Positions 13,145 to 40,710 of a DNA stretch of 64,000 nucleotides are shown one piece after another. Each line of letters starts with the position of its first letter. Within the stretch, counting starts at the first letter, position 1. The DNA is taken from the NCBI RefSeq assembly GCF_964204865.1, contig NC_135259.1:9734001-9798000 (forward strand). Direction: 5' to 3'. Both the position numbers and the translations under genes were made by a program. A model generated the notes under the pieces. That model had not been told where the DNA came from. It searched no databases and saw nothing but the letters and a program-made list of their open reading frames with translations. This DNA comes from Styela clava (lineage: Eukaryota).

Positions 13145-16100
13145 TTATTTTTCAACGTAGCACCCCGGGATTTCTGTAGATCGCAATGAAATTTTTACAT
13201 TATCGATTGTATCGATATTAAGAGTTTCGCGAACTAGATCTAATTTTTCATCGTCTGCAACGATGTCCGTATTATCTTCGATTGACGATTCCAAAGAACA
13301 ATTATCATCACCAAAGCTCACGCAACCTGAACTTGATGATGACTTTCGTTGTCGACGAGAAATCACATCATTGCCTACAGGCCGAATTTCTGCATCAGGG
13401 ATTGTTAGAAACGCACTCTTTTCCATGTAGTTGCCATTTGTGTAATCTTCTATTTCAGGTAACGTGTAATAATTTGTAACAAAACTGGCCTCGTTTTCAT
13501 CGATTTCAGCCTCAATAACGCAGCTCAGCCCGGTTTGGGATATATTGTCACAATCCGATGAACTTCTTTTGCTGGATTCCGAAAAACCAGAGTCGGTGTT
13601 CGTATTTTTTTCTGATGCCCGAGGACATTCGAAGCTGCTGCAATGCGAATCTACAATACCAGTTTCAAATCCAGAATCTTGCTGATCCCATGATACATCG
13701 TCTGAATGAAGCATGTGTGCGATATCTCTATTTTTTATTTTATCTTGTAGTTGGTGAACATCAGCAGAAGTTTCTCTTGGTTTTGATATAAGATCGACTT
13801 CTTCCTCGGTTGTGTTCATGACTTCACAGCCCGTAAGCACAGAAATATAACGATCAAATTCATTGCTTTCTTTTTCATATATACTTTCTGAAAATTGAGA
13901 ATTCGATATTAAAATCATGTGTCATAAATATATAACCCGATAGATGTAATACGTAGTCGTGGTCACTGAAAATTTTTGTGACTATGAAACTCTTTGCCTT
14001 CCCCGTGTAAAGTTGGGTTACTTATATATTTATTAACCTCATTTATTTATTTCACTGACACAGTATATTTTATTTAAATATAAATAGGTATTTATATATA
14101 TTAGGTAAATATATATATAGGTATTTGGAAAATCACTTTTAGACTTCAGTTTGTTTGGTATTTCTTTCACACATTCGTAATGAATACTTTCAAAATTAAC
14201 ATCATCGACAAAAGCACAATCTTCCGTATTACGAGCAACAAATGAATCCTGTAAAAAAATGTAACATTTATAAATATAAGTATAAATTGTGGGGATAGAG
14301 AGTTACAACTTAAGAACATTGTGCTACAAGACGGAGCTTAAACATTTAAAGTGAACAGAAATGAACTAATAACCCATATATATATTTATATGTATTATTG
14401 GCCATTATTAATAAGAACGATAAAGATAGTCAGAAAAAGGTCAAGACCTTTGGTGGCATATACAAAAAGGTAACTTTAAGCAAGGAACACAGAAAAAATT
14501 ATCAAAAAATAAAACTTTCCACGTCCGCACATCTTTTGTACCTGAAACGGCATAGATACAAAAACCATTTACATTGGTCCAGATTACTGTGTAATTTATT
14601 ATATTCTAAAAAGAATACCTTTTTGTTTGAATATAATATAAACGTTTTTTAAGTAATATCCCGTTTCACAATTAGGATTTACATATTATTATTAGAAAAA
14701 CAATTTATTTTTATTTCATTTTAATGCGATTCTCAATAATCTAATCTCAAAATGGCGATTAATTATGCCCAGAAGGCGCTCGCGTCAACCACCAAATTGA
14801 CAGTCGGTCGGGAGTTCAAGACGGCTTTGTTTAAAATGAATGAAGTTGCATGCATACAACTGAAAAAACTGAAATTCAGTTCTTTCGAAATATGTTTGAC
14901 TGCCAGTTCATTGATAGTTTTTCATAAAATTCCATGGGGAAATGCTACTCTATGAAATTAACTGTTGAATAAATTGGGCATCAAAATATAATTACCGGCA
15001 ACTCTTTGATTGAAGCTTCCAAAGAAGGTCTACATCTAGCTACAGATTTTCTATATTTCCACGTGAAAAACACAATGATGAGAAGTATGGTTGATATTGA
15101 TAAGGTTATAACAAGTGTTTTCCACGTGACATTGGATTGACCCAAGTAACAATATTTGTCTGAATGATTTAAGAGGAGACTAAGAACTAACAATGACCAT
15201 TTGCATGTTACGAAAGTAAAGGGTGCTTCTAAAAATTATGGTATTTTGCAGCAGATAAGAAAAAAAACTTCAACATAGACGCCTAAAATTTTTTCCTAGT
15301 GAACCTCACCACTCATACCTTTGGAATTGGGTAGTTCAACTGGATACTTTGTTTGGTAAAAGTTAGTACATAGAAAACAAATACATAGTAAATTAACAAA
15401 GTTGAGCTTTCCGCTGACGCAGTTTATAATCACGGAGCAAGATTCATAAGCTTGCGGTGTAAGTAAGAGAGCCAATTTTTTGTATGCTTTTATTTTTATA
15501 AACCGCAAATTTTGTGGAAGGCATTTAATTTTACATTCGAAAGAAGATTTTAAAAACACTTCATAAAATAAAAATTGGTATATTATTCTTGAGGATTACT
15601 TCCAAGCTATATGTTTTTGTATTGAAGATTATATACTCTGGGGATCTTATAAGCTAACTCGATTACGCTTCATTAATTACAGCGTTTAATATCAAGTGTA
15701 TAGTAGTTCTTTACGAATGATAATCTTGAAAAAAATATAAATGAAAGATTTTATTATACTTTCTATAAAAAGATAAATTCGCAAATCCCAACCTACCATT
15801 GTTGCAAGGTCTTTGACATATTGGATTCGAGCTCCATTTGTTATCATATCCTTTTAGTCGTGTGAAGAAACACATAGTCTCTTCACTATTTCGTTTATAC
15901 CTTGATAAAATATGCTCGGTAATGTTTTTTGCTGTAATATTTTCTAATAGATCGCATCTCTTCAATGTTTTCCCAACAAGAACGCTGTTTTGGTTTTCGT
16001 CTTGTTCAATCCCTTTGACGTCTCGAGAAAATTCACTGTGTGATTCATTGCCAGTTTGTACAAAGTCAGAAGGGGCGTGGAAAAAGCAAAAATCGACGCT

Positions 16101-19100
16101 GTAAAATAAGATAAAAACAATACAATTTAATGTATTATTTATTGATTCGTGACCCTTCATAATGGCGCCAACAATCGGGATACATGACTAGAAAAATTAG
16201 AAAATAACCATCAGAAGCCTGCGGTTATATATTCACAGATTTTTAGAACTGGTAAATGCAAAAAAAGCTTGATGGTCCGAGTCAGATGGGTTTCACAATC
16301 TTTTTCGAATTTTTTCTTTGCTCCATTCCGATCGGGACACGGTCAAGAATTTAATTAAAATGTCGCAAACTGTATTATATAGCTCACTAACAATCAAAAT
16401 TGGAAATTCTATATCAGTTATTTTCACGATTCGTACATGAAAGCTGAAACCACTAAAACATCTTCTTGTAGATGTTCCAATCTATTCGTTCTTGAATATT
16501 TGTAGCGAGTCAAAGCAAAAAATTGCTACGTTAATGTAGCATCATGAAATTATTTTTACTGACATCATTTCGAGATTATTTCATAAATTACCACAAATCA
16601 TACATGCAATTCGAAAAATTATTTCCGTAGAGTTGCCTCCTACATGTGTCGTATTTAGTTACGACTCCATCAAATATATTTATTAAATAGTATATATTAT
16701 TGAGCTTTCCGTCATAAATATATTTTGGGGTGATTTTACTCTGAAAATCGATGAAAGATCGAGTCGTCGGAACGTACATTGATGAGTCAGAGAAAATATT
16801 GACTTGACTTCAATATCATGCTTCATAGTGATCATCAATCTTGTGCCTTCATTTTTACCGACGGACCAATACCGATTACTCTTTGCAAGCTTCCAAAAAG
16901 CAACCGAGATTTACTCCGTTCATGGCACTTTTGTTTTACGGTACGGTATGTAAATTTATTAGTGAGAGTTGAAATGAAAACACTGATTATAGGATAAAAT
17001 AAAGTTTGACAAGAAGACATGGCGATTTGACGTTCAAAGCAATTTTCGAGTTTTCGATCAAATTAAAAATATCAGTGCTATTAAATATCGGCTGATACGA
17101 TATTTAGAACAGACATTCCAATTGGAATTGGATGCACGATCACGTGAATCAAAATGTCAAATATTAAGAAAATACATAAAAGTTGTGAAAGTGGAAACGT
17201 TGTGTATGATTAAGCATACGATCCAACTGTTTCTGTTTTGACATACCACATTGACGACATTATTATGTTTTAATTTTAACAGAAATATTCGTCATATTTC
17301 AAATCTGCGAGTCGAAGTTTCCTGAATTTCAATTTAATATTTGCAAGTTGATCTATATCTTAATTTATGAATAATTTATTTGATGTGAACCGTGTCGCGT
17401 AATAGTTCTCGCACGAAACATGTATTCATTTCAAAAAAGAAATGAACGCTACTAATATTTGAGCATATTTTTATATAAAGTATAGCGTATAACTGTACTT
17501 TACACTTTACAAATCATTAATTTATTATTCTGCTGCCAACTGCAATTTAGCGAACAAAGTATTTAATGCAAAATAAATTGGCAGTATAATTCGCAATATA
17601 TGCGACGAAAAGTATTATAGATTGCATTATACCCGTCCAAAACAATGTGGTATTATTTTCTTTCCATTACCTGTCCATAGGAGTGACCTTGCCCAGTAAT
17701 GTCATTTTAGTGTTACATAAAATGATGTTTACAAACAATCTAAGGCGTCGATGGAATAAGAATTTCCGTGACGGATTTTAACTAATAACATGTTGATATT
17801 ACATAAAGTCATTGTTGTGATAAGATATACCGATCACTTGATCCTATCTTGTTTATTAATTCAAGTCAGCAAATATGAAAAGTTCCATATTTAAACATTT
17901 GTGTATAAACAAAAGTCTCACCTTCTCTGTGTATACGTGAGGCAGAAAGATGCAAAATAACAACATCATAAAAGTACAAAAATTTACGAAAATAATCAGA
18001 AAATATCACTTACGGAGGATAAAAACTGTCGGTTGAGAGGGGTTGGTAAATTCCTTTGATCGATATAATACCACGAACCAGTTCTTTGCATGGAGTTCTA
18101 TCTGTTTCACTGCACCATTTCAATTCTTCTTGATATTCTTAAGGAAAGACATGATTTGCTGTTTAGTCCAACATGGATTAAAGTAGATTATGTTTGTATT
18201 CATATATATTAATGAATTCCGGGCGCTTTAACTTAAGTTTCTTTAAAACAAATTCCTAATCAGCGTGCAATAATTGAAAGATTTACTCTGTAATGCAGTT
18301 GTAAAACTAGTGAGGTTTTGGGTGGCACTTTCTAACGAATTTGGTCGTATTACTTATGATCTGAAACTTTATATTTTTAATAATTTTGATCATATTTTCA
18401 TACTTAAATGCAACAAAGTGTATATTTTTATATGGAAATATAATCCGTCTTATATTGTTTAGTGATGGATTGCACACGCAAAAAAATGGTTCATCAATTG
18501 TCTAAAGCGCTGAATTAAATATTCATTCTACCATGAGGACAGCACGTGCCCCTGAAGTACATACCAAACAACTGTAATTCACAATAATGTCCAGATTTTC
18601 TCATTGGCAGGTAAATAAAAAATACTTCGTCCTTTTTCCTCTTCGGCAACATGCAAGTACTAGTTGGGGTCATTCGGCAACAATCTCCAACACTTCGCCA
18701 ATTTTCTCCAATTTCTCTATATGCAATTAATAAAACATGCAAATAAGTTTAAGTCAATAATTAAGGACATTGTGGACGCGCTCATGTTTACATTCTAACT
18801 TTAAATGAGGCCACATACAAACTTGGTATCGGCCAGAGAAATATCGTCCTAGACAAAATAATTAAATAACTGAATCAGGTCAAAGCATATATCAAGTTTG
18901 AAGAAGCGTAACTTCCAAATTCATGACTGAGAATAATGACACAAACAAAAATTATTTTACATGAAGACATACATTACAATGCGTACATGTAATAATAACC
19001 AAGGATAAGTCTTCTTATTGGGTTTAATTATTTTTTTATCCTTTGAAAACCGAGACATTTCTCATATTTCGAGCAGTATATACAAATTATTCTGAATTAC

Positions 19101-19646
19101 CGCCATTGTGGAAATATAAAAGATATCAATCAAGCTAACATAAATCTGCTTACGAAATAATAGTATACGTCAAATTCTGTGCATAGTCCCCTTTTTCATA
19201 AATGTCAATCCAAAACTTGACGTCATCTCGAGATATGAAAAGATCTTGATGTGAAATACCAGTACAGTCTGTCATATCGCCATCGTCTAAATTAAAAAGG
19301 TATATTGCAATTTTATAACTACAAGTAATTATATTATACAGTATTTCCTATCGAATTAAAATCAAAGTCATATACACAAGTTAGCATGAACTTACTTGGG
19401 GGTGAAGGTACTTACTGTAGTGCAATTTGTTCTTATTTGTAACCAAATAATGCTCAATTAACAAAACATAACAAGACTCAATTCTGAAAATAAACAACCA
19501 TCTAAAGCTACAAACTCACAAAGTTTTTTCTTCAAGCAATCTTCGACTTCCACTTTACACATGTCTCCTTTGTAGCTACAATCAATATCCGCGTTCGTAA
19601 ATTTTAAGAAGAGAAGAACGATGAGGGTCAGACTCTCTTTGTTCAT
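13145..19646 (-). CDS. Type I transmembrane cytokine-receptor-like protein, paralogue A (618 aa, 8 coding exons)
   Basis: Exons: 19646-19520, 19286-19154, 18716-18565, 18137-18014, 16098-15797, 15159-14996, 14248-14137, 13887-13145; total 1857 nt, open to the stop, GT-AG introns with phases 1,2,1,2,1,0,1. Signal peptide MNKESLTLIVLLFLKFTNA, Cys-rich ectodomain, TM LVITLSISTILLIIVFFTW followed by KYRK, about 305-aa Ser/acidic tail. Gene structure is confirmed by the paralogue; family assignment is by motif only. Confidence 0.85.
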
Positions 19647-19704
19647 ATTTTCTAAATTACTAGTTTATTAAACATCATAATTTATACATACCATAGGTTA
19701 AAGA

Positions 19705-20045
19705 TTTGCAATCGGTTTTAATAAGGAAAAATATAAGTGATATAGTTACAGAAAATATAAATTTTTGTCTCCATTTTGTTTCGGATAACTTGTCAGTATT
19801 AGTCTATATTACTGTGGGAATAGCATAAAATTATACAGAAATACAATTCTTGTGGGAAATATTATACCTATCATATTATGTTGAAAAAATTGCAATCGGT
19901 TTTAATAATGAAAAATATAAGTGATATAGTTACAGAGAATAAAAATTTTTGTCTCCATTTTGTTTCGAATAACTTGACAGTATTAGTCTATATCACTGCG
20001 GAAAAAGCATAAAACTAAACAGAAATACATTACTTCTGGGAAATT
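19705..20045. repeat. Local direct duplication of about 183 bp upstream of the paralogue A start codon
   Basis: ttgcaatcggttttaataa.gaaaaatataagtgatatagttacaga... occurs at about 19705 and about 19889. Confidence 0.88.
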
Positions 20046-20479
20046 TTACCAACGTTTTACTACTAATACAAATCTAATTAATAATCATGCTATAAGAATG
20101 TCCAAGCACATGCCCAATAGTTACATGCCTCAACACAAAGCATCAGCACATTTCTTGTTGAACCCCGTTACAAATTTGAGAAATTATATATTACGATCGA
20201 ACTATTAATGTCAATCACTTATTTGCCTAAATCTCTTTTTTTCGTTTTGACAATAAAACGGGCTTCTGAATATCCCCGCTATATACTAATCCAAAATCCC
20301 CTCGCATCTGCTCAACTTTACTCTCATTAAATATGTGACATGAATAATCGCCCAAAATCTAACGCATAACTAAACAAAACAATAAATCTATTTATAATGT
20401 TATTAGTTGGGACGGGCTGATAATCGTGTTGATTTGTCTATTATCGTGACATTAGGTATTTTTATGATAAGATGGATAA

Positions 20480-21330
20480 CTTCATTCAATGTTTATCAGC
20501 TTGTAAATTTATTGTTGGTGGTTTCTGGAATAAGAATCGTGAAGATTTAGTCTACCGATAAACGCTTCAAAATCACGTTAGATTTTGGGAAAAACAATTA
20601 ATATTATTACAAACCCACAGATTTAAGAGTGACAATACCAATAGTAAATTATCTGCGTCACTGTCGAAAATTCCCACCCAACAAAAACATGATATTTTGA
20701 ACACGTTTGCCAAATAACATACAACGAAGCATAATATTACATGGTAATATAAAACCGCATATTTGAAGCGAATGTAAATACGTGGCAATCCTTCGAATCC
20801 CAAATTAACAATAAACAAATTCACCACTATTAGTCGATCTTATCACGATGTTTTTCTACTCAAAGCTCGGTGAACAACATGTAAATAGAATTAAATGGTG
20901 GCCAAATATGGCGGTCAGCTTAATTTTTTAACATTAACAAAAAGAACAATAGTGTTTAAATAGAAAAATAAGATAATTATTGGGTATTCCCGTAGTATTT
21001 GTACCAGATTAAGGTGAAGTCATAATTTCATTCCGATTTTCCCTATTTTAGTTCTAGTGCGAGTTCGGGGACGGTTTGTGGTCGCCAAGCAAATATACCC
21101 CCTGCCATAGGCTTTCGTCCTTTTACACAACTTGGTGTAAAGTAGGTACACATACTTCTGGAGCGCCAATTATTGTGCACAATTTTTTTTTTTTTTTGTA
21201 ATAATTTTAATTTAAAAAGTTACAATTGTGAATCATTACAGGAAGAGTCATTTGTGATGTAAAACTTTGTGATAAATTCAAATACAGCCAATCAACCTCT
21301 TGGGAGATTTCTGTTTATTCCGACCTGCTC
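20480..21330. promoter_or_regulatory. Putative promoter/5' region of paralogue A, conserved with 41210-41900
   Basis: Non-coding block alignable between the two gene copies. Includes gccaaatatggcg (YY1-like, 20901 and 41651) and ggtttctggaataag. Function is inferred. Confidence 0.4.
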
Positions 21331-23144
21331 CAATCATTATTATTTTCTAATATTATCCCCTCGTTCATTACTAGTATTCTGTTAATTTTACACCTGATTT
21401 GATTCCTTTTGACAACCAGAAAGATGGCATGATATGTTAATATATATTTGGGTTACTAAATGCTTCAACAAAGGCTATGTAGTCATACAGGGACAATCGC
21501 TACAGCATTCCCGAGACTAGATATGAAAAAGACACCGCAAAATACATATACATATATATGAATTTAAGCTCATTAACAAACTGCGCCGTCTTCGTCAAGC
21601 ATAAAAATAGTTTTATAGTTTGACATTTTTTGAGAATTTTTCCAAAATTGAGACAAATCCCAGGGGATAAAATTTATTTTTACGTATTAAGTATTTTTTT
21701 TTCGAAAAAGACTATCGACCCACAGATTCTACATTAAAATTTCATCATATTTTGTTACGTGACATACAAATCAGAACAAAAACTACTTGCCGATCGTAAT
21801 CTGCATTCATACATAGAATACCTTACTAAAGTATGCCTATACAAAGAAAAACATTCTTTAAAAGCCGAGCCTCAAGTTCTTGGATTCAAAGACGACAAAA
21901 TTGGCCAATAAATGAGGTAAACTTGGTAAATCTGCATAGTGTGACTACGTCAGCCTTGTGAAATTGGTTCATTGAATCTTTAACGACGAGATCCATTTCC
22001 ATGTTTGATTATGATCTACTACAGATGAAATCCCATCAAAAAGTAATATTTCTAGTGGAAGCCGAGTATAGCTCACTCATAAGAACACACATTGCTCCGA
22101 ACCGACCGCAAGTTTGTTGCTTGTACCAGCTATGGTGAATTTAATAATAGATGAAAGTATCAACGCCCATCCACTGTCTGAAAACGCGCCCATCAGCTAT
22201 ACGAAGATGAGTAAATCGTATTATACAGTATCAAGTGCGTATGACTAAAATCGTGAGTCATAACATTATATATTAAAACAAAATATGCGAGTGAGAAAAA
22301 GGGATTTTTTCACATGGATATTCAGAAATTATCTCAAAGTTTTTTTGCAAATTTAGAATTTGTGATTAATAAGCATATTTATTGACGAATTTTTTCGTGT
22401 TTTAAATTCATAATTAAAGGTGGGCCCATCCAGCAGCTATCTCTAACTAAACACGGGACTACAGTATATGTATTTTTTAATATATGATTTGCTGAAACTT
22501 CCCGATAAGCTAGTCTTTAATTACTATGCTACAGAGATGAATTTCAATGCCTCAGTAATGATTTATCTTATTTGTACGCCACAATCGGTAATCGATTAGC
22601 AGTCAGTTGTCATTTGAGATCGTTTTTCAACAGGATCAATCACTTTATAATTCGAACGCCTGTCATTGCTTCAACGGGCGCCTTCGACGTGGATTACATT
22701 TCTTATGTTGCAAATTACAAATTGCTATATAGGTTATCGTTTTATCTCGTCAATTTTAACCACATTTGACTAACATTGTACTGAAATTTGGTTAACATAT
22801 CAAATTACTAATAGTTTTCGATAAATTAAACTTGAAATTTGATGTTCAGGTCGCGACAAGAGCTCAAACAGTTCCTGATTGACAATCACTGTCAGATTAC
22901 CTTAGGTATGTAACTTACAAAAAGCAATTTTCGAGCAGCTAATTGAATCTGCACAAAACTCTAATCATTTATTTTGATTACAATAATAGATTTGAATGCG
23001 AGGATGACCAGATGGAGTATAATATGATTCTTTCTTGCTCTACACTCACTTTATAACCTGGAAATGTGATATTGCAATCTATCAGTACTTGAGACTATCT
23101 ATTCAAAAAACTAATATACACAATATGAGCCAAATGTGGGGTCA

Positions 23145-24030
23145 TCAAATTTTTTATATCGACAATTTCAACCTCGCATAGGTTTGCAAACATACTTTAA
23201 TATCCTTAGAAATACGAACCGAACGATCTCGTCGACGAGGCAACACAGACATCCTGTTATAGGAACTCTAAACTATTATATACAATACATCACGTTATAT
23301 TTTTAATTCGTTACAGTTTTTTTTTCGCAGACAAAATAACGGAAAATTTATCTTACTCACTAGTAGGAAATTACTCTCTGCTACGACGAATTGGCTGTCA
23401 GATATTCACCGCCATGTGTAGCATTTTTTCGGACGTGCATTATTGAGCAGAGATTTTAAATTGCCAGGCATGAACATAACATACCGTTATAAGATTATAA
23501 AATGACGAACACTCTCCACTAATGCACATTGCTTTTAATCTCAGAATATAAAATACGCACTTCGATCTAATTGACCCATAAATTTAATATCTGTTTAGCC
23601 CGCAGTCAATTCATAGACTTTGAACTTATCACCTATCGAAATGGGCAAAAACTAACATTTGAAAACCCGAATTTAAATAAATTTTCGAGCAATTCAGATT
23701 ATGTATTGATCCAAAATAAGATTATTATTTTGCTAATTCTTTTCAGTATTAATTTTCCATCATCCAATGAAGTTGTCCTAGATCTATTACTACGTGTTTG
23801 GATAATAAACGATTGGAAACACTTTTACGGTGCAATATTGAAGTGGATCGGATATCACACAAGTATCACGCTTTGCTGTGGTGTTCTCCCATAATTCTAT
23901 CTGCAGTTTTCATTCGAAATTTCAACACAAGTTGAGATATTTTACTGTTTTTCTAAAGTGAAGCAATTGAGCCGTCCTGGACTAAAAGCTAATATTTGCC
24001 TATACGGTTATAAGGTCTCTATGATTAACA
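23145..24030 (+). repeat. Interspersed repeat (same family as 5190-6010 and 45300-45680)
   Basis: Direct similarity seen across several 20-30 bp blocks. Confidence 0.85.
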
Positions 24031-24324
24031 ACCGTATAGTGTGAAATATTTATCTTAAACATGAAAATACGCAACAATATCTTATCTCATCAAATCATCA
24101 AAAATATTAAAAAATCTCTCTGAACTGGTCTTTATATTGTTTTCAATAACAGTATACCAAGAACTGCATAATTTCCCTTTCACGTATATTTAGCTTCTTA
24201 TTGCGACCTTTACAATACTACTCTTTGCTGTTGCAACATTGCCAACTGACAATGCCCCTAAATCTGGATTCGCCCTCTTCTACAATGCCGTTGCATCAGG
24301 CATGTGCGACATCGGATTCATCGA

Positions 24325-24565
24325 TATTTTTACTTATTGAGCATGTTGATATCGGTAAATATGTAGGTATTTGTTTGTCTTTTAGACACTTTCGTATGTA
24401 AGCGATATCTCATGAAAGCGAGGTTTGTTCTGCAACAAATTTTGCATGTGCATTCATCATATCTCGGACCAGAAGCTTATTGATTTTGGATGACACGCGG
24501 TGTTGCTATTGAGTCAGAGCGGGGGAATCGAAACCGCAGTTTCTGTTTTGGGGGATTTCCCAACT
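24325..24565 (-). mobile_element. Short interspersed element, possibly Helentron/DINE-like; same family as 49040-49295
   Basis: Shares cctcgctttc.tgagatatcg, cccccaaaacag and gataagtaa/aataagtaa blocks with 49040-49295 in opposite orientation. Class is inferred. Confidence 0.55.
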
Positions 24566-24627
24566 TCCGGCGCTGCGAACGATTGTGTGCGTAACAATGC
24601 CCTGTCTGCGATGTGGAGCGTTTAGCT

Positions 24628-25331
24628 CAGTGGTTCTCAACCTGTGGTACGTGGGAGCTTTTCAAGTGGTACGCGAGCAGATTTAAATTATTGCAACAAT
24701 TAACCCTACAGTTGGCTAAAATCTGCCGGCAACGCTTTATCTTCCTTACTGTATGTATTCACTAAACAGCGTTTATGGATGTTTACCCAAGCATCAGTTT
24801 ACTGGTTCATTTCCGTAACCATACCCAATCAGCAATAAGTCAATAATGACGCAACACGTAACAATTGCAATTTCTGCACCCAGCCGGCCAGACACTTCTG
24901 TCGCCCAAAGAGATATTCAAGCATGGTTGCAAACATGTTTTTGTAGTTTTGAGTGATATTTGTCAGTTTTCGGTTGTGTTTCAAGAAAATAATTGTGAAT
25001 TAATTAACTTAATTGTAATTGTGTCTTCCGCGGAGCTTTAAACCTTTGTATATCAGTACCTGCAAACGACACATGGTTGATTAATTTTAATAAAATGATG
25101 GTTTCAAACACGTAAACCAGTTTTTATGCGCCAACACATCAAAACATTTTCCGAATAAGCATAAAGTTTGCAATAGTAAAGAATAGGGATAGTGCCTTAT
25201 TATGAAATACTTCCATAGCCCGTTTCTTGTGTCTTTTTCTTAACCCCACATAAGGCGCTTTGTTGGTGGTACGCGGCCATAGTAAAAAACAGTAAAGTGG
25301 TACGCGGTCAGTAAAAGGTTGAGAACCACTG
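24628..25331. mobile_element. Non-autonomous hAT (Charlie-like) element
   Basis: TIR cagtggttctcaacct...aggttgagaaccactg; perfect 8-bp TSD GTTTAGCT at 24620-24627 and 25332-25339. Confidence 0.93.
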
Positions 25332-25684
25332 GTTTAGCTATTTTGGTTACACGGCGCTACGACTTTGTAGGGCTGGTGATGGCCGGTGTATTGTCCCAAA
25401 TTGTCGAGTAAAATATTGAACATGTGGAAGATCGATAAGTCGGTGGTCTCCAATCGCTATCTAGTTTTAGTGTCAATACAACAGCATGTCCAAAAAATTG
25501 GTTGGAATATTATCGATATGAATTGAAACATTATCCGGATTCAATTGACGTTTATACGATACCCTTGTCTCATTCAAAGCTCAATCGCGCTATATTTAAT
25601 AATGATTGACCCCAAAAATACATAACAGATAAATTTATTAATAAGTTATTTAATTTTTTCCACACCTGGATTTCTGTTTATGTA

Positions 25685-28135: not shown

Positions 28136-30660
28136 ATATGATTGTACACAAGTTCCAATAATCTAGGAAGTTTTTCTCAATATATGTTCCAGATGAGCTT
28201 CTTGGCGTTTGAGACTTTCAACCGTTGCAAAAATATGTTTCTTAGTTTTTTGCTGAAGCTTATTTTCCGCTGTCACCACATGCTATTAGCAAAAATAATG
28301 TTCACTGAAACATTGCACCTCCAACGAAAGACTTACAGTACTCACACTCAGTAAAGTGCGCGGCATGCAAACATTGCATAATCGAACCATATTGGTCTGA
28401 AGACAAAAAATGAAAAGAGCTTAAACAGAATGTTGTGGTGCTAAGGAAGTTCTGGTCATCACTTGAGCAATAAAGAAGAGGGATTGATCGAGGTGACTAG
28501 TAGTCCAGTTGTAGCGAATACACATCAAATCACACTCTCGACTGGTTAGGAAAGGCTAACCAGTAGTGACGACGAGTGGGCATCTCATTCAGATCAATCC
28601 TCATACAAATGATGAACTGGTGAACTAAAACCTGCAACTGCAGCAAGAATCAGAAAATCGGCATGGATGAGTGCGTGCGAGTGATCAATAATATTACGCA
28701 GCGGATGCAGGACTGTTTCCAACACCGAGGAGGTCATTGGTAACGTAGTCTAGAGAAAACGGTTGTCGCCTTTTAAGCAAAACGATTTCCAGATTCCTGA
28801 AACATTTGGCTATAATCATACACAAACAGAAATTCAAGTGTAAAAAAATGAATTAATCATCGATTTGAAAATAGAATAAGTACTCACCTGTATACAACCA
28901 ATCATCAACGATAGATAAATGTTTAAACTAAAACTGGGATAAGAAATTGATTTTATAGATGCTTAATTTTCATGTTTGACACCTGATAGACATGGAGCCA
29001 TGTAGTCAAATCTAATTTGTCCTGTTCACTCTCTACGTCAATGAAAATTTTGCTAAGGACGTCCCATACACCAATTCCATCGATAGAATTTCCAATGACT
29101 TTAATTAAGCAATTATTCTAAAGTAATCTAGAAGGGTTCCTCTCAGTATCGGGCTATCTTATTTCAATTGACTAGATCGATACAAGCTTTGTTTATATCA
29201 CTCTATTCCTAGTTTACACATCGATTCTCTTCATTGTTTTAAAAACATTTACTTATAAGTATTGGATTACTACTAAGTATTACCTTCTTTTTTTTTTATC
29301 TTTGAGTCAAGTTTTAATTGCCCCACGATTTTGTGTTTGATAAACAATCGATCCATTCTTTTTTTAATTCGAATTTGCCTATACCTATCAATCTTCCCGC
29401 TTACCCTGCAACTTATCTCATTAGTATTTCATTGTATAGGACTTTCAATTTGTTTAACTTATTCCAGGCCGTATTCATCTAATGCAAAACTTATCATTTT
29501 TTTGTATTTGTATATTGGTTTTTAGCCCTTTACATGTTGCATTGGAATCTCTGTCTTACTATCAAAAATCTTTCAATCATAAAATGGCATTTATCATTTT
29601 TGATGATTACTGAACGTAGCTGACGATGAGGATAGTGCGTGACTCATTTATTGAACAGTTTAAACCTCATGTTAAACTTAAGTCATAAAAAGTCATGTTA
29701 CAAAAATATTGTATTGTACGTCATATTTTTTATTTAAATACACAAATATATTTAGCTCTCGATGTCTTCCAATACCACATATCCAAAGTAAATGAAAGAG
29801 TATTCTTTGTTGTTTGTATGTTGGTTCACAGCAATCTATCCTGTCTTAGGCCAGAACATGTCACTGAATCCTGCATTGTCGTCGCGATCCACACCTATCT
29901 TGATTTATAAAGAATTTGATATTCGTCTAAATTAATCTTATATCATGGATTATTATAGGTGGAACTGGTGAGATGGCATATCAGAGCAGCACAATTTTTT
30001 TTCATTAAAAATATTATATTTTGTTGCGAATGTAAATTATCATGTTATTAAATTTTTGATAGCTTCAACTTTGAGATATCATTTTTTTAAGCACTGCAAA
30101 AAACCAATGCTCAAATATATGAACACTAAAACCAAAACTAAGTAGTAGGCCCACTCTCCATATTAGCAAAAGGCTAGCAAAATCTTATTGCAAACTATTC
30201 GATGTCATAAAAAACCTGCTTACAGTAAAAAAATATCTTAATTGACTATCAGACATTTGACATTGTGCCATTATGTCACCGTCGAAATAAACAGAAGTCA
30301 TAGCTTTCTAGCGACAACACGCGTTTATAGCGCATTTTTTACTATAATTTTTTCGTGAATTTTTTGAAACGGGATCTAGTTAAATAAATAATCATACAAA
30401 CTTTAAACTACTTTTCACTCATATAATTAAAGTTGCAAATTTTATCTATAGCAGAATTCTCTAAAAATAAAACGGATTAGGATTGAAACAAAATATGGAA
30501 AGCATAAAATTTTACTTTACAAAATTATGAAACGGAAACAAAAAATGACAACGTCTAAAACCTTCTTATAACTTTATAATTCCACCAAAAATTTTACCAA
30601 TTCATTTTTATTTCAAATAGATTTTCTTTATTCAAGCAACTAATGAAATTTAGCATCGAT

Positions 30661-33600
30661 TTATTTTCTAACGTAGAATCCCGGAGTTTCAACATCCGCT
30701 GCTTCTTCGATTGACGATTCCAAAGAACAGTTATCATAATCTAGACTTATGCAACCAGAACTTGACGACGTTTTTCGTTTTTGATGAGAACACAAATTTG
30801 AACCGGCATTTTTAATTTTTGCGTCGGAGATTGTTAGAAACGAACTCTTTTTCATATAGTCGCCACTCATTGTGTAATTTTCCACTTCGGGCAATGCGTA
30901 ATTAATTATATCACATCCAATCTCGTTTTTTGCAGTAAGAAAACTTATATCAATTTCGTCATTTGCAGAGCAGCTTGATCTAGTTAGTGATACTATTTCA
31001 CTATTAGCTGAACTTCTTTTGCTGGATTCCGAAAAACCAGAATCATTGTTTCTATTATTTTCTAATACTTCAGGATGTTTTTCGAAGCTGATGCAATGCG
31101 TATCTGGTATACCAGTTTCGAAACCAGGATCTTGTTGATCCCATGTTACGTCGTCAGACTCGAGTTGCACAGAAATAACACTATATTTTGTTTCATCGTG
31201 TAATTTGTTAACTTCAACTGTTGTTTTGTTATGCTTTGAAATAAGTTCGACTTTTTCTTCAAGTGTCCCTATGATCCGGCCACGCGTAAGCACGGAAATA
31301 TATCGATCCGAATCGTTGTTTTCATTTTCATAAAAGCCTGAAATGATTATGATTAAAAATATACATCATTAATATAGACGATGAAATAAAAAACGGGTTG
31401 AAAAAAGTGACGTCTGAAGATGCTGATGACCGAAAAACACAATTTTAAAAACGACCTTGATAGAGTTTTAGTTATTGTACATTAGTAGTACCAGTAGTAT
31501 TATTAAAGTTTAGTGAACTTGGGAAAGAAAGAGGAAACAGATGAATTGCGTATTTGGGACTCAAGTTAAATGGTTTATCACTGTGAAAACAGATTTCCTG
31601 TTTTACTATGATCTTCTGTATATTTTTCTCGATATAATAAAATAATCACTCGTTGATTTTAGTTTCTCAGGTATTTCTTTCACACAATCCCGATGAATAG
31701 CGTCAAAAGTAACATCTGCGACAAAGACAAAATCGTCCTTATTTTGAGCAACAAAGGAATCCTGTAAAACAAGCAAACCCAAAACTCAAATATTTCAGAT
31801 ATGGACTTAGATAACTTCGATTCAACAGAATTTACTGTCGAGGGATTATATTCGTTGCATAAATTTTTTTTTTTCAAATATAACAATATTTCACAGTGAG
31901 TTGGATTGCCCAATTTTGGTAACCCACAAAGTCGACAATAAGAACCTCTAAAGTGGTTTTTTCGTTATACAAATTGATTTATAGAATATTATATAAACAA
32001 CAATTTATTTGTATTTGACTGAAACGTGAAGTGATCACAAATTGGCGATTTATTATGCCCGGGAGGGTATAAACCTTTACTACCATGTTGCTTACATAAT
32101 ATTGCCACCAGGTATATACTTCTTGGAAATACAACAAACGCGTCGTTATTTAGAATTTTTATATAGAACGATGTGTTTTTTTGTATAGAAAATCGAAACG
32201 TTCGCGAAGTATATTGTTTTGCTATCGCCGTTTGTCTTCTATATAATTTGCCAAGCTATCAGGTTAATTTTTGAGAACGTAATTATTCGTATTCGGAAAT
32301 CTCATAATGATTTTTTTTTTCATAGAAAAAAAATTTTGTAACTTAAATTCAACTTTTTAGAAATCTTTATTATCAGCTGTTCCCTGTCTAATTTTTTTTA
32401 TTCAATTGCATTTTGTGAAAATGCTGCACTATGAAATTATCTCTTTAAACCCACATGGCATTGAAATATTATTTACCGGCAACTCTTTTATTGAATCTTC
32501 CAACGATGGTCTGCATGTAGCTACAGATTTTTTATATTTCCACGTAAAAAACACAATTATGAGAAGTACGGTTGATATTGATAATGTTACAATTGTTTTC
32601 CACATGACATTGTGATTGTGTTGATCCAAGAAAAAATATTTCTCTGAATGATTCAACATTTTATCTTTAACAGTTAATTAGGTGAAGAACTGGGAATAAA
32701 ATAAAGATGTATATATCAACAATATCGGCCATTTTTCCATATCGGTATAGGCAAATATAGACCAATAATTTCAATATTAATTTCTTTGTTCTGATCTAGA
32801 ATGTTTCGTAAGTGGTATGAATATGATCATAACTGATCAAATCATTAGTATATACGTTGACGATAATTACATATTACACAACGGTATCCGTGATATCGGC
32901 ATTCTGAAATATCGGTGTACAGGTATCGGCGTTTTTCCATGGTGTCGATGAAAAAAGTGATATCTGTACAGCTCTATAGTTTGAATATTTGTGTGGCTTT
33001 ACTCCACATATCATCGCACACAAATTTTCACCGCACACAAATTTTTCAAATTGAAGCTTTCAACCAATTTATGGCCATGCAAATACCATCCGTGATCGTA
33101 AGTGTGGGCTATATACGCAAAATTTGAGAATAATGGAATTGTATTCATACTCGAAAGTTGAGTGCCAAAAAACAAATAAAAATTCTCAAATAAATAATTA
33201 ATTCATATGCTAGTGTGTGTTATATATAGTGTGTTATATATATATATTATTTTAAAATTTTCTTATGGGAGGTTATATAGTATACAGTAGTGGAGAATCT
33301 TATAAGCAGACGTGGTTATAATTTGTTTTACATTACAGCGTTTACAAATCAAATATATTGTACATCTTCACTAGTGGAAGTAGTCTACTGACAAACGAAT
33401 TGTAGTCTGACAAAAAACAATGAACGAAAGATTTTAATATATTTTCCATGAAGATATATTCTCAAATCGCAACTTACCATTGTTGCAGGGTATTTGACAT
33501 ATTGGATTTGAGCTCCATTTGTTATCATATCCTTTTAGCCGTGTGAAGAAACAAACAGTCTCTTCAGCATTTCGTTTATACCTTGATGAAATATGCTCGG

Positions 33601-36600
33601 TAATGTTTTTTGCTATAATATTTTCTAATAGATCACATCTCCTCAATGTTTTCCCAACAAGAACGCTGTTTTGATTTTCATCATGTTTCATCCCCTTCAC
33701 GTCTCGAGAAAATTCACTGTGTGATCCATTTCCAATTTGTACGAAGTCAGCAGGGGCGCGGAAAAAGCAAAAATCGACGCTGTAAAATAAGACAAAATTA
33801 ATATAAATCTTTTTTGTTATTTATTCACTCGGTTCGACCCTAAGTAAAGGCGCCAACAATCAAATGCATGATTAAAAATTGGAATATATATATAACTACC
33901 GCAGCTTGAAATTTTGTATTCACAACTTATGGATGCAATTAGGCTTGCACGTAATTGACAAAAATCAATTCCGTAATTACGGCAAAATCAATTACGTAAT
34001 GACCCCGTAATTGCGATATTTTTCCACGCATTTAAACCTATCATAACAACCAATTGAATCCACTTCTTTTCCGAATGGGCCATTGAAGTTGGGTTTTCAT
34101 ATTCTTGGCAGTACTACACGCCGGCGGCAGATGTTAACGACAAATATCAAGGAGTGAATTCAAACTAATTTTATTCTGATTTTTATCTTTTGTGTTAGCT
34201 TTGGTTTTCCTTCATCACCTTCGCAAATTAACTGTCCCATTTTTATGCGATCATCTTTATCATTACCGACACTGGTATACGGATATTTATGGAAACGATA
34301 GTTTTTTAAAATCGACTTTCGTACTAGATAAAAATGACGGGTTTCTAATTTATTAACCACCGACGAGCTTATTCTCTCGTTTGATTAACCTTGCGATTTC
34401 CTCGCGACGAAGACTTGTTTTTGCAGCGTTTTAGGCATTATCCGACATTACTGCCTTGTTAGCATTTTATAATAATAATTATTGATGTCGACTTATTGAC
34501 GATATTCCGATTACCATGCTTCATTTTACATTTAATCATTTCGCGGACTGAATGTTTATAACATTATTTACGATAAATTTAAATCAAATATTATTTATTT
34601 GCGTATAATTTAAATACCGAACTTATACAAAGTTATATCGCAAAACAATGCATTTTGTGACATTTATTTTACACTCACGACATTTATTTGCTAACTCAAG
34701 TCGGCGATCCTATCGGCCAAGATTGACACAAGTTTGGTCGAGTGTCGGTGGTATTCAAGTCGACGATAAATCAAAATAAGTTGCCGCATTTGGTAAGACA
34801 GTTAATCATATATGGCCGAAATATTGCGAGGAATTGTGAAAAACATCATGAGCAAGGCCAAGTCCGGACTGATATATAACGATAAAACCGTTAACAGAAC
34901 ATCAAGATTTTGTAATAGAAAATGGATCTCGCACAGAATATACACACTGGCTCATATTTGATTATATATGATAGCAGTTAAATTTTTAGCGATCCGCGAG
35001 GAATCCGTCGTTTTGCTGTTTCTCTGCCGTCTCAATCGCTTTACCGATGCCGAGAAGACGAAGTTGCGCTGGTTCATTGCGCAATCTCTCTTTTGTCGTC
35101 ATATTTCTATTTGATAAACGCGACATTAATTATCACGGCGAGGTATTGGCGCGAGTGATCAATCGCTCTTTTCGCTTATTTGGTTCCAATTCGTCGCGAA
35201 AGCTCTTCGTTAAATTTCACAAGATCGTCGTGTTGAAAGGTTATGGATATTTTCCTGTTATTCCCCAAGTCTGAAATAAAACAGCCAAAAGCAGTATGAT
35301 ATTCCATGTTCATATATCAAGTGTTGATATTAACAATAAAGAATGGTTAAGCATTGCTAATCCACACTTGGCGGGGAATTCCCACTATTTAAACGCGTGA
35401 CTATAAATTAGAATAAAATAGAAACGGAACATATATACCATAAGTAACGGAAAACTGGAACAAGTAAATAATAAATAAAAGTAAAATGGATACAAATGTT
35501 TGATAGACCATGTTTGATAGATTCATCTCCTGCGTTCATTAGTCATTTCACCCGAAGAAGTTGAAACCGGGCTGTTAGCGTCCATCGGTCTTAACACAAT
35601 TCTTCCCCCTATCTACGGTTATTAGGTACATTGGCCATGGCCATGCTAGATAAGATGCGAGAGAAGTTGAAACCAGGTGTGTTGGCGTCAATCGGCCTCA
35701 ACGCAATGCTATCCCTTATCTACGGTTAAGTTGCGGGAGAAGTTGAAACCAGGTGTGTTGGCGTCAAACGGCCCTACTCAGTTCTTCCCCCTTAACTACG
35801 TTAATAATAAACATTGGCAATGCCAGATAAGTTGATAATAGGTTAGTAAATGGCAACGCGTCATGCCTTCCTTCACCTACATAACAAGAGAGAGAAAAGA
35901 GAGAAAAACGGCTGCGAATACCGAAACTCTAACTTCTTCTACTTGTTGAGCTTTCATTTTTCGCAATCGACGAAATTGACTGCTTTGAAGAAAGCTCGTT
36001 TTAATGCAATTATTACGACTTTACGTAATTCGTAACTTCCCTTCCGTAACTCCAAATAATTACGTAATTCCGTAAATCCGTAAATTACGTGCAAGCCTAG
36101 ATGCAATATTTCATGATAATTTGAATCAAGAAAATACAGAACAATTTCACGATCTCCTGAAATATTTAGTGCTAGTCCAAACGGGTCACGGTTACAATTC
36201 TATTTGAGTAGTGCAAACTTTATTATATATATAGCCACGTTATTAATTAATCTTGGATATTTTAAATCAAATATTTACTTTTCACTATTTTTAAACTGAT
36301 ACTACTTCAGTTGTCTATATATTTTTTCAAATCGTCAACTATTTTACCTCCAAGTACTAGCAATTTGATAATGCATGTAATAAAATGTACTCTGTTATGG
36401 TAGATATAGAGCAATTTAGACTTTACACTTTAATGTAGCGTTGTAAATAGAATTACACCACTTTTATCAAATCCGAAAAGCTAATGGCAATGACGTAAAA
36501 AAATATTAATACTTCCAACATGTGTTGGGCATGAACGCGAACACTTTTTTATGCGACTGTAACCGCATATATATGTCACACTATGGATATGACTCTGTGG

Positions 36601-39600
36601 AATATAAAAAAAAATTCACTGCATATTATCGCATACTTCATGCCCTAAATGTATTTCTGTGTGATTTCACTCAAAAAATCGATGTAAGAGCGAGTCGTCT
36701 ATAACGTAAAGCGATGAGTCAAGAAAAAAAGCCGACGAAAATATTGACCTCATTGGCAACGGCGGGTAAATATTAAGCAAGTTTACAGTATAACTACCCA
36801 GATTTACTTTATTCGAGACACCTTTTTCTTATGGTTTGATTGAAAAATTCATCTGTGAGAGTTAGTGAAAGAGTTTAATAAAAACCCCGATGAGGAACTT
36901 GGTGCACAATACAATCTGACAAGAAGATATAAAACTTGTGAGCTCTGTGCAGAACTTGAACTTAGCTTGATCACAATTAATCGTCGCATTTCAAATCTAC
37001 GAGTCGAAATTTCCTGAGTTTCAATTTAATATTTGCAGGTTGATCTATATCTTAATTTATGAATAATTTATTTGATGTGAACCGTGTCGCGTAATAGTTT
37101 TCGCACGAAACATGTAATTAGTTCAAAATAGAAATGAACGCTTACTTATATTCGACAAATCATAAATTTATATCCCGCTGTCAACTACAATTTAGCGACA
37201 AAAGTATTCAACAAAACGCCAATATAATTTGCCATATGTGCGACGAAAAGTATTATCGATTTGCATTATACTGTTCGAAAAAATGTGGTATTATTGTCTC
37301 GCCACTACCTGTCCATAATATTTTCAGTAATTTTATTGAAATTTTACATTAAAATGATGTTTACAATGTAAGGCGTCGATGGAATAAGGATTTCCGTGAC
37401 GGGACTCGACTAACAACATGTTGACATTACATAAAGTCATTGTTGTAACCAGATCCTAGCTTAATCCTATCTTATGTTGGTGTTTAATAATTCTCAACAA
37501 CACAAGTGGAAATCTTCATATATAAGCTTTCGTATATATATATACAAAAGCACCACCTTCTTTGTGCTTCCATGAGCCATTTGCGCAGAGCATTATTTAA
37601 GAGAAAGATGCAAATTAGCAACCTCAAAAAGACCACAAATATTACGAAAATAATGAGAGAGCATCACTTACGAAGGATGAAAATTGTCGGTCGAGAGGGG
37701 ATGGTAAATTCCTTTAATCGATATAATACCACGAACCAGTTCTTTGCATGGAGTTCTATCCGTTTCACTGCACCATTTCAATTCTTTTTGATATTCTTAA
37801 ACAAAGACATGATTAGTTGTTTAGGTTAACATGCATAAAAAGAGCATAATGAGTTTTTATGTATTGGTAATATAAACTTGACGTATACCAGGATAGTTCG
37901 ATAGTTCAAAGCAAGATCTTAACTCCTGATTAAAAACTCAAAGATTTACTCAGAATTGTATTTGCATATTAGTGGCTTAGTGCAATGTGGTGTCATGTGT
38001 GGCAAACAAATATATTTTGCCGCCGTAAGCCTAATGATATCAGAATTTTTATGCATAACCAATTTGCCAATACTTCTTATACTTGAATGCAACAAAACAA
38101 GTAATCTCACGACTAGTCGTATCTTATGCATTTGGTATTGGTAATAGACCTTGGTTATTCAAAACCCACCCTACGCGCAAAAAATAAAAGCGACGTAAAC
38201 AAAACGATTTTAACATTAGCTCTTATGGGGAATGTGATCACCAGAGAAGAAATTTGCATTCTTGTAATTTTCTAGTTATCTTTTGTTGTAGACGTGTGCA
38301 GTTTTGTGAATAGAATACTTTTTATATACTTTTTGATATTTTTATCATGATAAACATGGCCAAGATTTTTGATAATCGTTCATTGAAATAATAATGGCCG
38401 TGGTGTTCCCGCTGGCGTGACATTCTGCCAACGCGCTGTGATCTGTGAAATGTGCGCTCCAACTGCTTCTTATTGTGTGATAACAGAATACCGGGACCAC
38501 AACATACCGTGTTTGACGTTTAAAGAAAGACCTATTTTAGATAGTAAAGTTTGGCCGGAATGGCAGTCTGTTCACATATTCAGTCAGATTCACTTTTCAA
38601 GGTTACTGGCTTTGCGCATATTCTGTCGGTACAGCGAGCGACTTTTCTCTGAAGGCATGCTGACATGTTTTTAACCTAGTTAGGATACCGGTACTGTACC
38701 GTTATTGAATTTAATGTAATGGGTTGGTGATTTTTATCTTTGTTTTTGTATATAACTTATCCGACCGGGACCTATTTGCTAACATTTCAGTTCTGATTTA
38801 GTTTTCACCCCCTTCTGCCCTGGTACGGTACTGGTAGTTTAAAATAAATAACACGTCAGCATGCCTTCAATAGATGGGTGCTAACTGTACAGGTATAAAT
38901 GCGTAAAACCAGTAAACAAACGCGATTGAAATGATATAGATAAAAGACTGTCGATTCCAAACGCTTCCAGTACCGGTACCGTACTCAAAGCGACATTAGC
39001 GCTGCAGTTCGTATTTCACAGGTTGGCAGAATGTCACGGTCTAGGACTAGGGGGAGTGACGTCAGCGGCAACGTCACGCTCATTAAAATTATAATGTACG
39101 ATTATCAAAAAACTTGACCATGTTTATCGTCATAAAAATATGGAAGAATATCTAAAAACCACTCTATATTTAAAACTGCCCAGGTTTACAACGAAAAATC
39201 ACAAAAAATGCAAATTTTCGCCCTGGTGATCACATTCCCCATAATAGCCAATGTTAAAACAGTTTTGTTTACGGCACTTTTATTTTTGCGCGTAGGATGG
39301 GTTTTAAATGACTAAACTAAGGTCTATTGATGGATAGCGCGTATAAAATTTAATTCCACTATTACCAAGAACGCTAAACAAAATATTAATCGTTAGTTGC
39401 TGTGATTTTTATAGTACATACCGAATAACTGTAGTTCACAGTACTGTCCAGCTCGTTTCATTGGCAGGTAAATAAAAAATACTTCGCTCTTTTTCCCCTT
39501 CGGCAATATACAAGTGCTAGTTGGAGTCATTTGGCAGCAATCTTTAACACTTTGCCAGCTTTCTCCGATTTCTCTACACATGTAATTGATGAAAAATGCA

Positions 39601-40710
39601 AAAAAGTTCAAAAGTCATGTCGTTGTTAACGAATCACGACGCCATATACAAACTTGATTTCGACCAAAAGAAATATTTTAGTTTAGACTAGATATCAGAT
39701 AGCTAAAGTAATCAAGGTAAACGCAGGTCACCTTGGAGCATATATTAAGTTTGAAGAAGCCTAACTTGAAAAATTTGTGTCTAAGAAGGATGGAACAAAA
39801 AACTAATTTTGTATGATGATAAATGTGTATATATTGTATATGTATTATCTATGATATTGCAGATAATCAACGGAAAGAATTTTTATTGAGTTATATATTT
39901 TTTTTAACACATTGGAATGCGAGGCTTTTCTAATATTTGAGTGCACCTCACAGAGATGTCCATGTTTGATATTCAGCTTGTGTTGCAATATTTTGGAGAC
40001 GTATACAAAATCTTATTACAATCCAGCCTATATGGACCAAAGTTATACTAAACTCCTAATCTTTATATAAACATGAACTCATATTCTTACATTTCTCGAG
40101 TTCAAAGACTCGTTCATATTCTGAGCAGTATACAACGGTTCAAAAGTGAAAACTTGATCTCACATTTTTCTAAATTACCGTTATTGTGGTAATATTAAAG
40201 ATATCAATCAAGCTAACATAAATCTGCTTACGAAATAATAGTATACGTCAAATTCCGTGCGTAGTTTCCTCTTTCATAGATGTCAATCCAAAATTCGACG
40301 TCACCTCGAGATATGAAAAGATCTTGATATGAAAGACCAGTACAGTCTGTCATATCGCCATCGTCTAAATTAAAGATATATTGCAATTTCGAATTTACAT
40401 GTAATGTTTTATAGATTTACTCCAAACAAAGTCAACACTCATCTATAACTTTATGGTAAAACTACGAGTTACCAGTGCTTATCAATTTGTTCTCAATAGC
40501 GACCAAACAATCCATTAATCAATGACGGATTATCAATGATGAACCCCAAACTCTGTTTTAAAAATAGATAACTGCAAACTCACAAAGTTTCTTCTTTAAG
40601 CAATCTTCCACGTCCACTTTACACATATCGCCTTTGTAGCTGCAATCAGTGATGGCGGTTGAAAATTTCAAGAAGAGGAGAACGAGCAGGGTCAGACTCT
40701 CTTTTTTCAT
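30661..40710 (-). CDS. Type I transmembrane cytokine-receptor-like protein, paralogue B (597 aa, 8 coding exons)
   Basis: Exons: 40710-40584, 40364-40232, 39573-39422, 37795-37672, 33779-33478, 32643-32477, 31761-31650, 31337-30661; total 1794 nt, open, same intron phases as paralogue A. Exons 1-5 and 7 have identical lengths (127,133,152,124,302,112). Third-position substitutions in exon 4 support the chosen frame. Confidence 0.85.
33940..36099. mobile_element. 2.16-kb non-autonomous hAT element in intron 4 of paralogue B
   Basis: TIR taggcttgcacgtaatt...aattacgtgcaagccta, subterminal cgtaat/attacg arrays, perfect 8-bp TSD GATGCAAT at 33932-33939 and 36100-36107. Absent from the equivalent intron of paralogue A. 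Confidence 0.92.
35555..35830. repeat. Three degenerate tandem units (about 77-105 bp) inside the hAT element
   Basis: Units start with gaagttgaaacc at about 35557, 35662 and 35738. Confidence 0.85.
38143..39328. mobile_element. Foldback-type DNA element with very long inverted arms, in intron 3 of paralogue B
   Basis: Termini aatagacctt...aaggtctatt. Arms pair over several hundred bp, e.g. atggggaatgtgatcaccag with ctggtgatcacattccccat, and ggcatgctgac with gtcagcatgcc. Absent from paralogue A. Confidence 0.85.

Follow-up and report, generated by a model that had tools for sequence, protein, structure and literature searches.

Tandem genes for putative cytokine-receptor-like proteins in the tunicate Styela clava

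Class II cytokine receptors, the vertebrate interferon and IL-10 receptor family, carry an F-G disulfide at the end of the second domain (D2) of their ectodomain. Among class I cytokine receptors, the EpoR gene has eight exons, comprising one for the signal, four for the ectodomain, one for the transmembrane (TM) helix and two cytoplasmic exons, and gp130 carries STAT3 sites of the G-Y-M-P-Q type. IL-17 receptors are known in tunicates, which are the sister group of vertebrates. The present analysis concerns two genes of the tunicate Styela clava, termed A (LOC120338218) and B (LOC120338219) and both annotated as "uncharacterized", which lie in a 64-kb window of contig NC_135259.1 (positions 9,734,001 to 9,798,000; ~33% G+C, no N) and whose layout resembles that of the EpoR gene.

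The published intron phases of class II receptor genes are 1-2-1-0-1-0 over seven coding exons (PMC8863823), with 1-2-1-0-1 across the pair of fibronectin type III (FnIII) domains (10.64898/2026.05.30.728932). The beta-TrCP consensus DSG(X)2+nS acts in IL-10R1 (as DSGFGS) and in IFNAR1, and IL-10R1 has two DSG degrons (PMC3210801). BLAST surveys date IL-10R to fishes (PMC9857879), and interferon (IFN) and cognate receptors have been claimed in lancelets and lampreys in a 2026 preprint (10.64898/2026.05.30.728932). Ciona is reported to have two class I receptors only and one JAK (PMC1963337, PMC3296744).

Cytokine-receptor-like working, irrespective of ancestry, is tentatively put forward here as the best single explanation of genes A and B, which would be paralogous chains of a small receptor family of the Styela lineage that work like non-enzymatic cytokine receptor chains. 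A relationship to the interferon/IL-10 receptors of vertebrates is suggested only weakly. The preliminary description of this DNA had proposed divergent class II-like receptors in an apparently invertebrate genome. The host can now be sharpened to a tunicate and, since tunicates are the closest relatives of vertebrates, deep homology becomes a more plausible possibility. A literature search found no paper on these Styela genes.

Gene structure and transcription

Genes A (13145-19646) and B (30661-40710) are tandem paralogues on the minus strand; gene A ends with its stop codon at 13145, and gene B starts with its ATG at 40710 (all coordinates are positions within the window unless another contig label is given). 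Both consist of eight exons with GT-AG introns throughout, an open frame and intron phases 1-2-1-2-1-0-1, and encode products of 618 amino acids (aa) for A and 597 aa for B, so that the two intact tandem eight-exon genes first described were recovered at their places. The copies are diverged direct duplicates within 13.1-40.7 kb, with 70-86% identical DNA blocks over the exons in conserved order, and when they were compared in translation, eight coding blocks of the minus strand stood out as conserved. No third copy was found within the window. The spliced model of gene A is identical to database protein P0010, and that of gene B matches database isoform P0001 through residue 373.

A search of sequencing runs with the stretch 13700-19700, of which exons make up about one fifth, recovered 12-19% of the sampled words in each of eight transcript-like runs and 76-84% in each of four DNA-like runs. 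Contigs of three transcript-like runs (X1-X3) and of DNA run X9 were placed on 13701-19700. All seven junctions of gene A were present in two or three of the transcript-like runs and none in X9, which bears out the predicted exon chain; the genes are transcribed and spliced as modelled, the junction evidence being that of gene A. An acceptor at 15186 for exon 6 of gene A was rejected, as transcript contigs place it at 15159, and the gene A product is therefore 618 aa long.

Two minor junctions of gene A in runs X2 and X3, one skipping exon 6 (14247/15796) and the other most of exon 6 (15050/15797), shift the frame and lead to TM-less products of 285 and 282 aa. In gene B, the frame is kept in database isoform P0002, in which exons 6 and 7 are missing and the ectodomain runs straight into the tail, and P0001 retains intron 7. 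Because both database isoforms depart from the full chain in one of these ways, we infer the full-length 597-aa form of gene B, with TM helix and long tail, as a model.

The exons are listed below, D1 and D2 being the two predicted beta domains of the ectodomain and the cap a short N-terminal segment.

Gene A exon 1, 19520..19646, minus strand: start codon, signal peptide and first three cap Cys; end phase 1; junction 19286/19520 in X1 and X2
Gene A exon 2, 19154..19286, minus strand: fourth cap Cys (Cys50) and first half of D1 to NLTYTIIS; end phase 2; junction 18716/19154 in X1-X3
Gene A exon 3, 18565..18716, minus strand: second half of D1 (EIGENW...CC...C.LP...C); end phase 1; junction 18137/18565 in X1-X3
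Gene A exon 4, 18014..18137, minus strand: first part of D2 (WC...C); end phase 2; junction 16098/18014 in X1-X3
Gene A exon 5, 15797..16098, minus strand: main part of D2, with DFCFF.APS, dibasic RYKR and the family-invariant C...R...W S..P.C end; end phase 1
Gene A exon 6, 14996..15159, minus strand: stalk, TM helix and conserved juxtamembrane motif (...CRPSLEASIKELP); end phase 0; junction 15159/15797
Gene A exon 7, 14137..14248, minus strand: membrane-proximal part of the tail, acidic and hydrophobic; end phase 1; junctions 14248/14996 and 13887/14137
Gene A exon 8, 13145..13887, minus strand: remaining tail with DSGFETG, DSGFSESS, GNYMEKSA, RKSSSSSGC, C-terminal GCYVEK and stop codon
Gene B exon 1, 40584..40710, minus strand: in the model, P0001 and P0002
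Gene B exon 2, 40232..40364, minus strand: in the model, P0001 and P0002
Gene B exon 3, 39422..39573, minus strand: in the model, P0001 and P0002
Gene B exon 4, 37672..37795, minus strand: in the model, P0001 and P0002
Gene B exon 5, 33478..33779, minus strand: in the model, P0001 and P0002
Gene B exon 6, 32477..32643, minus strand: TM helix; in P0001, skipped together with exon 7 in P0002
Gene B exon 7, 31650..31761, minus strand: donor modelled on gene A; P0001 continues into the intron
Gene B exon 8, 30661..31337, minus strand: tail and stop codon; in frame in P0002

Around exon 4, about 900 bp (17280-18182 compared with 36972-37840) are 76% identical between A and B, well past the 124-bp exon, and the intronic sequence near this exon is conserved better than other introns of the two genes.

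The gene family and its proteins

When the 377-Mb assembly was searched in six frames for exon 5, three further, distant copies came up. A profile built from five exon-5 peptides and run against 1.84 billion representative proteins gave nine matches in total, including five S. clava family proteins (P0001, P0002, P0003, P0004 and P0008), which represent four genes; gene A shares a 50% cluster with the gene B isoforms in this search. Among the other matches, P0007 is an unplaced 111-aa fragment on a 1409-bp Logan contig, and P0005, P0006 and P0009 were rejected as unrelated repetitive proteins. Two homologue searches made to deepen the family alignment returned Styela clava proteins only. With P0011 the family comprises six genes, all from Styela clava and arranged as three two-gene clusters, and as far as databases show it is restricted to the Styela lineage, almost only to this species:

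Cluster C13: genes A and B of the window
Cluster C6: LOC120331924 and LOC120331655, in tandem
Cluster C2: LOC120336723 and LOC120336719, tail to tail (C2:12105950-12136000)

Protein identity between the three clusters is 23-30%. The eight-exon plan is common to the paralogues, with identical phases at every resolvable junction. Comparison of A with B gave a dN/dS of 0.36 overall at dS 0.44, with 0.30 in the ectodomain (dN 0.083) and 0.39 in the tail, and genes A and B are under purifying selection.

Hydropathy gave a hydrophobic leader (residues 1-19), an ectodomain (residues 20-291) and one TM helix, followed by tails of 306 aa (A) and 283 aa (B), in agreement with the signal peptide, Cys-rich ectodomain, single TM helix and long tail that had been proposed. 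The ectodomain is Cys-rich (16 Cys in A, 15 in B), glycosylated and without a known domain. It begins with the cap, in which three of the four Cys come from exon 1 and the fourth, Cys50, from exon 2. D1, a beta domain of ~95 aa from exons 2 and 3, has four conserved Cys, a CC doublet among them, and holds C.LP; the phase-2 intron between exons 2 and 3 of gene A interrupts the peptide NLTYTIIS / EIGENW. D2, which comprises ~140 aa from exons 4 and 5, starts with WC...C, holds DFCFF.(A/V)PS and ends, with the peptide TMCFFTRLKGYDNKWSSNPICQ at the end of exon 5, in a segment that is invariant in the family (C-x3-R ... W/F-x-x-x-P-x-C). Ten Cys are invariant across the family, and C255 and C273 (gene B numbering), which are invariant family-wide, lie on the last two predicted D2 strands.

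The predicted D2 helix includes the dibasic RYKR (15890-15901 in gene A, and at the same place in exon 5 of gene B), at which furin-type cleavage is possible. A, B and one C6 gene share RYKR; the second C6 gene has RYTR here, and the C2 genes lack the motif.

The long tails of the family (283-323 aa) are acidic, rich in Ser and Thr and match no Pfam domain, consistent with the earlier claim of a tail without kinase, TIR or SEFIR. A conserved juxtamembrane stretch follows the TM helix, reading CRPSLE.SIKELP in A and B and K-T-C/F-F-P-x-Y-x-x-T-I/V-x-E-I/M in paralogues. The tail motif DSGFS..S, which is present in C13 and C6 genes, fits the DSG(X)2+nS beta-TrCP consensus. RK.SSSSGC also occurs in the tails, as does G-Y-[M/V/T]-x-K, whose two to four copies include one at the extreme C-terminus. 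These motifs are conserved among paralogues that are only 23-30% identical. In cluster C2, LOC120336719 has a 308-aa tail with five G-Y-x-x-K-like sites and LOC120336723 a 55-aa tail without Tyr, a pairing reminiscent of the R1 and R2 chains in class II receptors.

Comparison with cytokine receptors and alternative explanations

AlphaFold2 was run on the shallow family alignment for gene B isoform P0001 (pLDDT 54) and paralogue P0004 (pLDDT 60), and all scores of the structural searches that follow fall under the level that the search tool calls trustworthy. The two low-confidence models agree in plan: a leader helix and a short helical cap are followed by a beta domain of seven strands, then by a larger beta domain that includes one helix, and finally by a TM helix. 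As to the two FnIII-like sandwiches proposed earlier, both models predict two beta-sandwich domains and the membrane-proximal D2 is probably FnIII-like, but D1 was not matched as FnIII. In the Foldseek list of the gene B model no match was better than E 1e-3; its leading entries, with E from 1e-3 to 3e-2, were cytokine-binding modules (EpoR, IL-22R1/IL-10Rb, IFNAR2, IFNLR1, beta-c and IL-2Rb). Class II receptors are among the best, weak structural matches (IFNAR2, IFNLR1, IL-10R1/R2, IFNGR1/2, IL-20R2 and tissue factor) and head the re-ranked matches of both models, and an IFNGR1 fragment took rank 1 in an unbiased structural search. On these models, class II receptors, class I receptors and generic FnIII domains cannot be told apart. 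A wide structural search with the gene B model was uninformative, as the TM helix dominated its matches.

The intron phases of A and B, which have eight exons, agree with the published class II array at five of six positions. The position that differs is the intron inside D2, which is in phase 2 in A, B, P0008 and P0004 and in phase 0 in class II genes. Because phase-1 borders are general for extracellular modules, the agreement carries information at two introns only, the one in D1 (phase 2) and the one that follows the TM exon (phase 0). The gene structure is compatible with deep class II kinship, yet no evidence for it. As the earlier description noted for class II genes, each predicted beta domain is split over two exons, with a phase-2 intron in D1; the D2 intron departs from class II in its phase.

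The likeness to class II receptors comprises type I topology, a pair of predicted beta domains with two exons apiece, a TM exon, a kinase-less tail, the phase series 1-2-1-?-1-0, a putative Cys pair at the D2 end, paired or clustered genes, a predicted DSG degron in the tail and candidate soluble forms by loss of the TM exon. The Styela family differs in the lack of a Tissue_fac or Interfer-bind match, the phase-2 intron in D2, an additional cytoplasmic exon, the N-terminal Cys cap, ~10 further conserved Cys including the CC doublet, a D2 of ~140 aa with an inserted helix, and the lack of a PxxLxF box 1 and of a known ligand. With class I receptors (EpoR, GHR, gp130 and the Ciona gp130-like receptor) it shares the overall architecture, EpoR being the top Foldseek match of the gene B model, and its G-Y-M/V/T-x-K motif recalls the STAT3 sites of gp130; it differs in having no WSxWS, no CX9-10CXW, no PxP box 1 and no fn3 or other Pfam match. 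It resembles IL-17 receptors in having two putative FnIII-like, Cys-rich ectodomain modules and differs from them in lacking a SEFIR tail domain and any match to IL17R_fnIII at E up to 10. An IL-17 receptor identity was rejected, with neither SEFIR domain nor IL17R module found.

Several results weigh against a cytokine receptor function. In hmmscan searches against Pfam at E up to 10, single exons and full-length P0010, P0001, P0003, P0004 and P0008 gave no match, and no Tissue_fac, Interfer-bind, fn3, IL17R_fnIII, SEFIR, TIR or kinase domain was found in the family. A six-frame genome search with Tissue_fac (PF01108) and Interfer-bind (PF09294) gave no match in the window. The anticipated match to Tissue_fac, Interfer-bind or IL17R_fnIII was thus not obtained by exon, at full length or in the six-frame genome. 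Profiles run against PDB sequences returned TM-helix or OspA-like noise only, and an ESM Atlas feature search reached a best score of 0.75 (CMV US8), below the useful level. Regular expressions over six family members found no WSxWS and no class I CX9-10CXW...C pattern, only a single W-S/D-x-x-P-x-C being present, and neither PxP nor PxxLxF near the membrane, where a different conserved Pro-containing juxtamembrane motif stands in the position of box 1. Among the structural results, the Foldseek matches of the paralogue model were noise (sliding clamps and Fabs), generic FnIII domains, including those of adhesion receptors, tie with cytokine receptors in the unbiased search, and D1 matched only jelly-roll, CBM and GOLD-type sandwiches. 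Short motifs such as the DSG and Tyr ones can have independent origins, and there is no known ligand for the Styela family; a preprint whose structure database includes S. clava proteins of <=400 aa reports that, lancelets and jawless vertebrates apart, it recovered no IFN homologue (10.64898/2026.05.30.728932). Weak Interfer-bind matches elsewhere in the genome were ordinary fn3 repeats, and not better class II candidates.

If genes A and B do work as cytokine receptor chains, a secreted ligand would bring two chains together, probably the products of paired genes; one other cluster has a long-tail and a short-tail gene. A cytosolic tyrosine kinase, either the species' JAK or another, might be held on the conserved juxtamembrane motif, of which K-T-C-F-P-x-Y-x-x-T-I-K-E-I/M-P is a form seen in paralogues, and phosphorylate the repeated G-Y-[M/V/T]-x-K motifs, which could then dock SH2 proteins such as STAT; docking of STAT is a guess, and a point against this scheme, because position +3 of the Tyr motif is K instead of Q. 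DSGFSxxS would recruit beta-TrCP for down-regulation, as in IFNAR1 and IL-10R1, and the TM-less splice forms may act as soluble decoys. We infer each of these steps, from ligand and kinase to SH2 docking, degron and decoys. A STAT gene and a JAK-like gene are present in the S. clava genome. On the same contig as the window and ~0.6 Mb from it, C13:10391665-10391865 has a Jak1_Phl match of 37 bits inside a 1119-aa open frame, pointing to a JAK gene that contains very few introns.

The family could instead be a lineage-specific surface family outside cytokine signalling, acting as recognition, adhesion or endocytic receptors whose beta-sandwich ectodomain would bind non-cytokine ligands, for instance microbial or self surfaces, with a tail for trafficking and turnover. 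Its confinement to one lineage, fast evolution (23-30% identity between clusters) and Cys-rich glycosylated ectodomain without known domain would suit such a role, as would the tandem beta-sandwiches, which are common in adhesion and recognition proteins and for which adhesion-receptor FnIII domains score equal to cytokine receptors; the acidic Ser-rich tail with its DSG motif fits regulated endocytosis. We regard this explanation as somewhat doubtful, since signalling receptors are a better fit to the repeated, conserved G-Y-x-x-K, to the conserved juxtamembrane motif and to an ectodomain of two-domain size, and conservation is stronger in the ectodomain (dN/dS 0.30, dN 0.083) than in the tail, unlike in many diversifying recognition receptors. 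Decaying duplicates, or mis-annotated transcribed sequence without protein function, would account for gene B database isoforms that miss the TM exon or the long tail and for the lack of a homologue of known function. Open frames over eight exons with canonical splice sites in both genes, a dN/dS of 0.36 at dS 0.44, spliced transcripts in several runs, and ten invariant Cys and conserved motifs across three clusters make this highly improbable.

That genes A and B truly belong to the class II helical cytokine receptors as highly diverged members, with an unrecognised tunicate helical cytokine as ligand and signalling by JAK/STAT, appears unlikely, although the class II receptors heading the re-ranked structural matches of both models, the IFNGR1 fragment at rank 1 in the unbiased search, the intron phases 1-2-1-x-1-0 with their agreement at five of six positions (PMC8863823), the invariant C...R...W/F-x-x-x-P-x-C at the D2 end, which may correspond to the site of the class II F-G disulfide, the occurrence of the genes in pairs, including the long-tail/short-tail pair, and a DSGF-type degron as in IL-10R1 (PMC3210801) all speak for it. 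The reported lancelet IFN and receptors (10.64898/2026.05.30.728932) would put class II before the tunicate split. The Tissue_fac and Interfer-bind models remained unmatched at every threshold tried, no class II ligand was found in S. clava, and the D2 intron is in phase 2, not 0, in each paralogue tested. Most of the phase agreement is cheap, given how general phase-1 borders are among extracellular modules, and the Cys cap with many further Cys, a D1 not recognised as FnIII and the lack of a PxxLxF box 1 also argue against it. What stands of the class II-like assignment in the preliminary description is the tandem type I proteins with a kinase-less tail, the weak structural matches and the five of six phases; the profile match, the D2 phase, the Cys content and the D1 fold do not support it. 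It seems improbable that the six genes are a tunicate remnant of a class II stock past sequence recognition, with the gene pairs as heterodimer chains for helical cytokines; if true, this together with the reported lancelet IFN system would place class II signalling in the chordate ancestor and provide a handle on it in tunicates.

Cytokine-receptor-like working independent of ancestry is accordingly retained as the tentative preference. As an expressed, conserved family with cytokine-receptor layout in the sister group of vertebrates, these genes are a candidate test of whether tunicates kept, replaced or reinvented a signalling arm. Even if unrelated by descent, they would be an uncharacterised, lineage-restricted signalling receptor family with testable tail motifs (G-Y-x-x-K, DSGFSxxS and the juxtamembrane motif).

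Neighbouring sequence in the window

Two further features lie outside the tandem pair:

8593-11385, minus strand, downstream of gene A: three open reading frames (ORFs) of 122-205 aa, one with RVT_1 (E 3e-9)
51191-52471, minus strand: single-exon ORF of 426 aa with Bile_Hydr_Trans (E 2e-29) and BAAT_C (E 4e-51)

By its ORF content, 8593-11385 looks like a decayed non-LTR retrotransposon. The domain matches identify 51191-52471 as a predicted acyl-CoA thioesterase or BAAT-type gene, apparently intronless.

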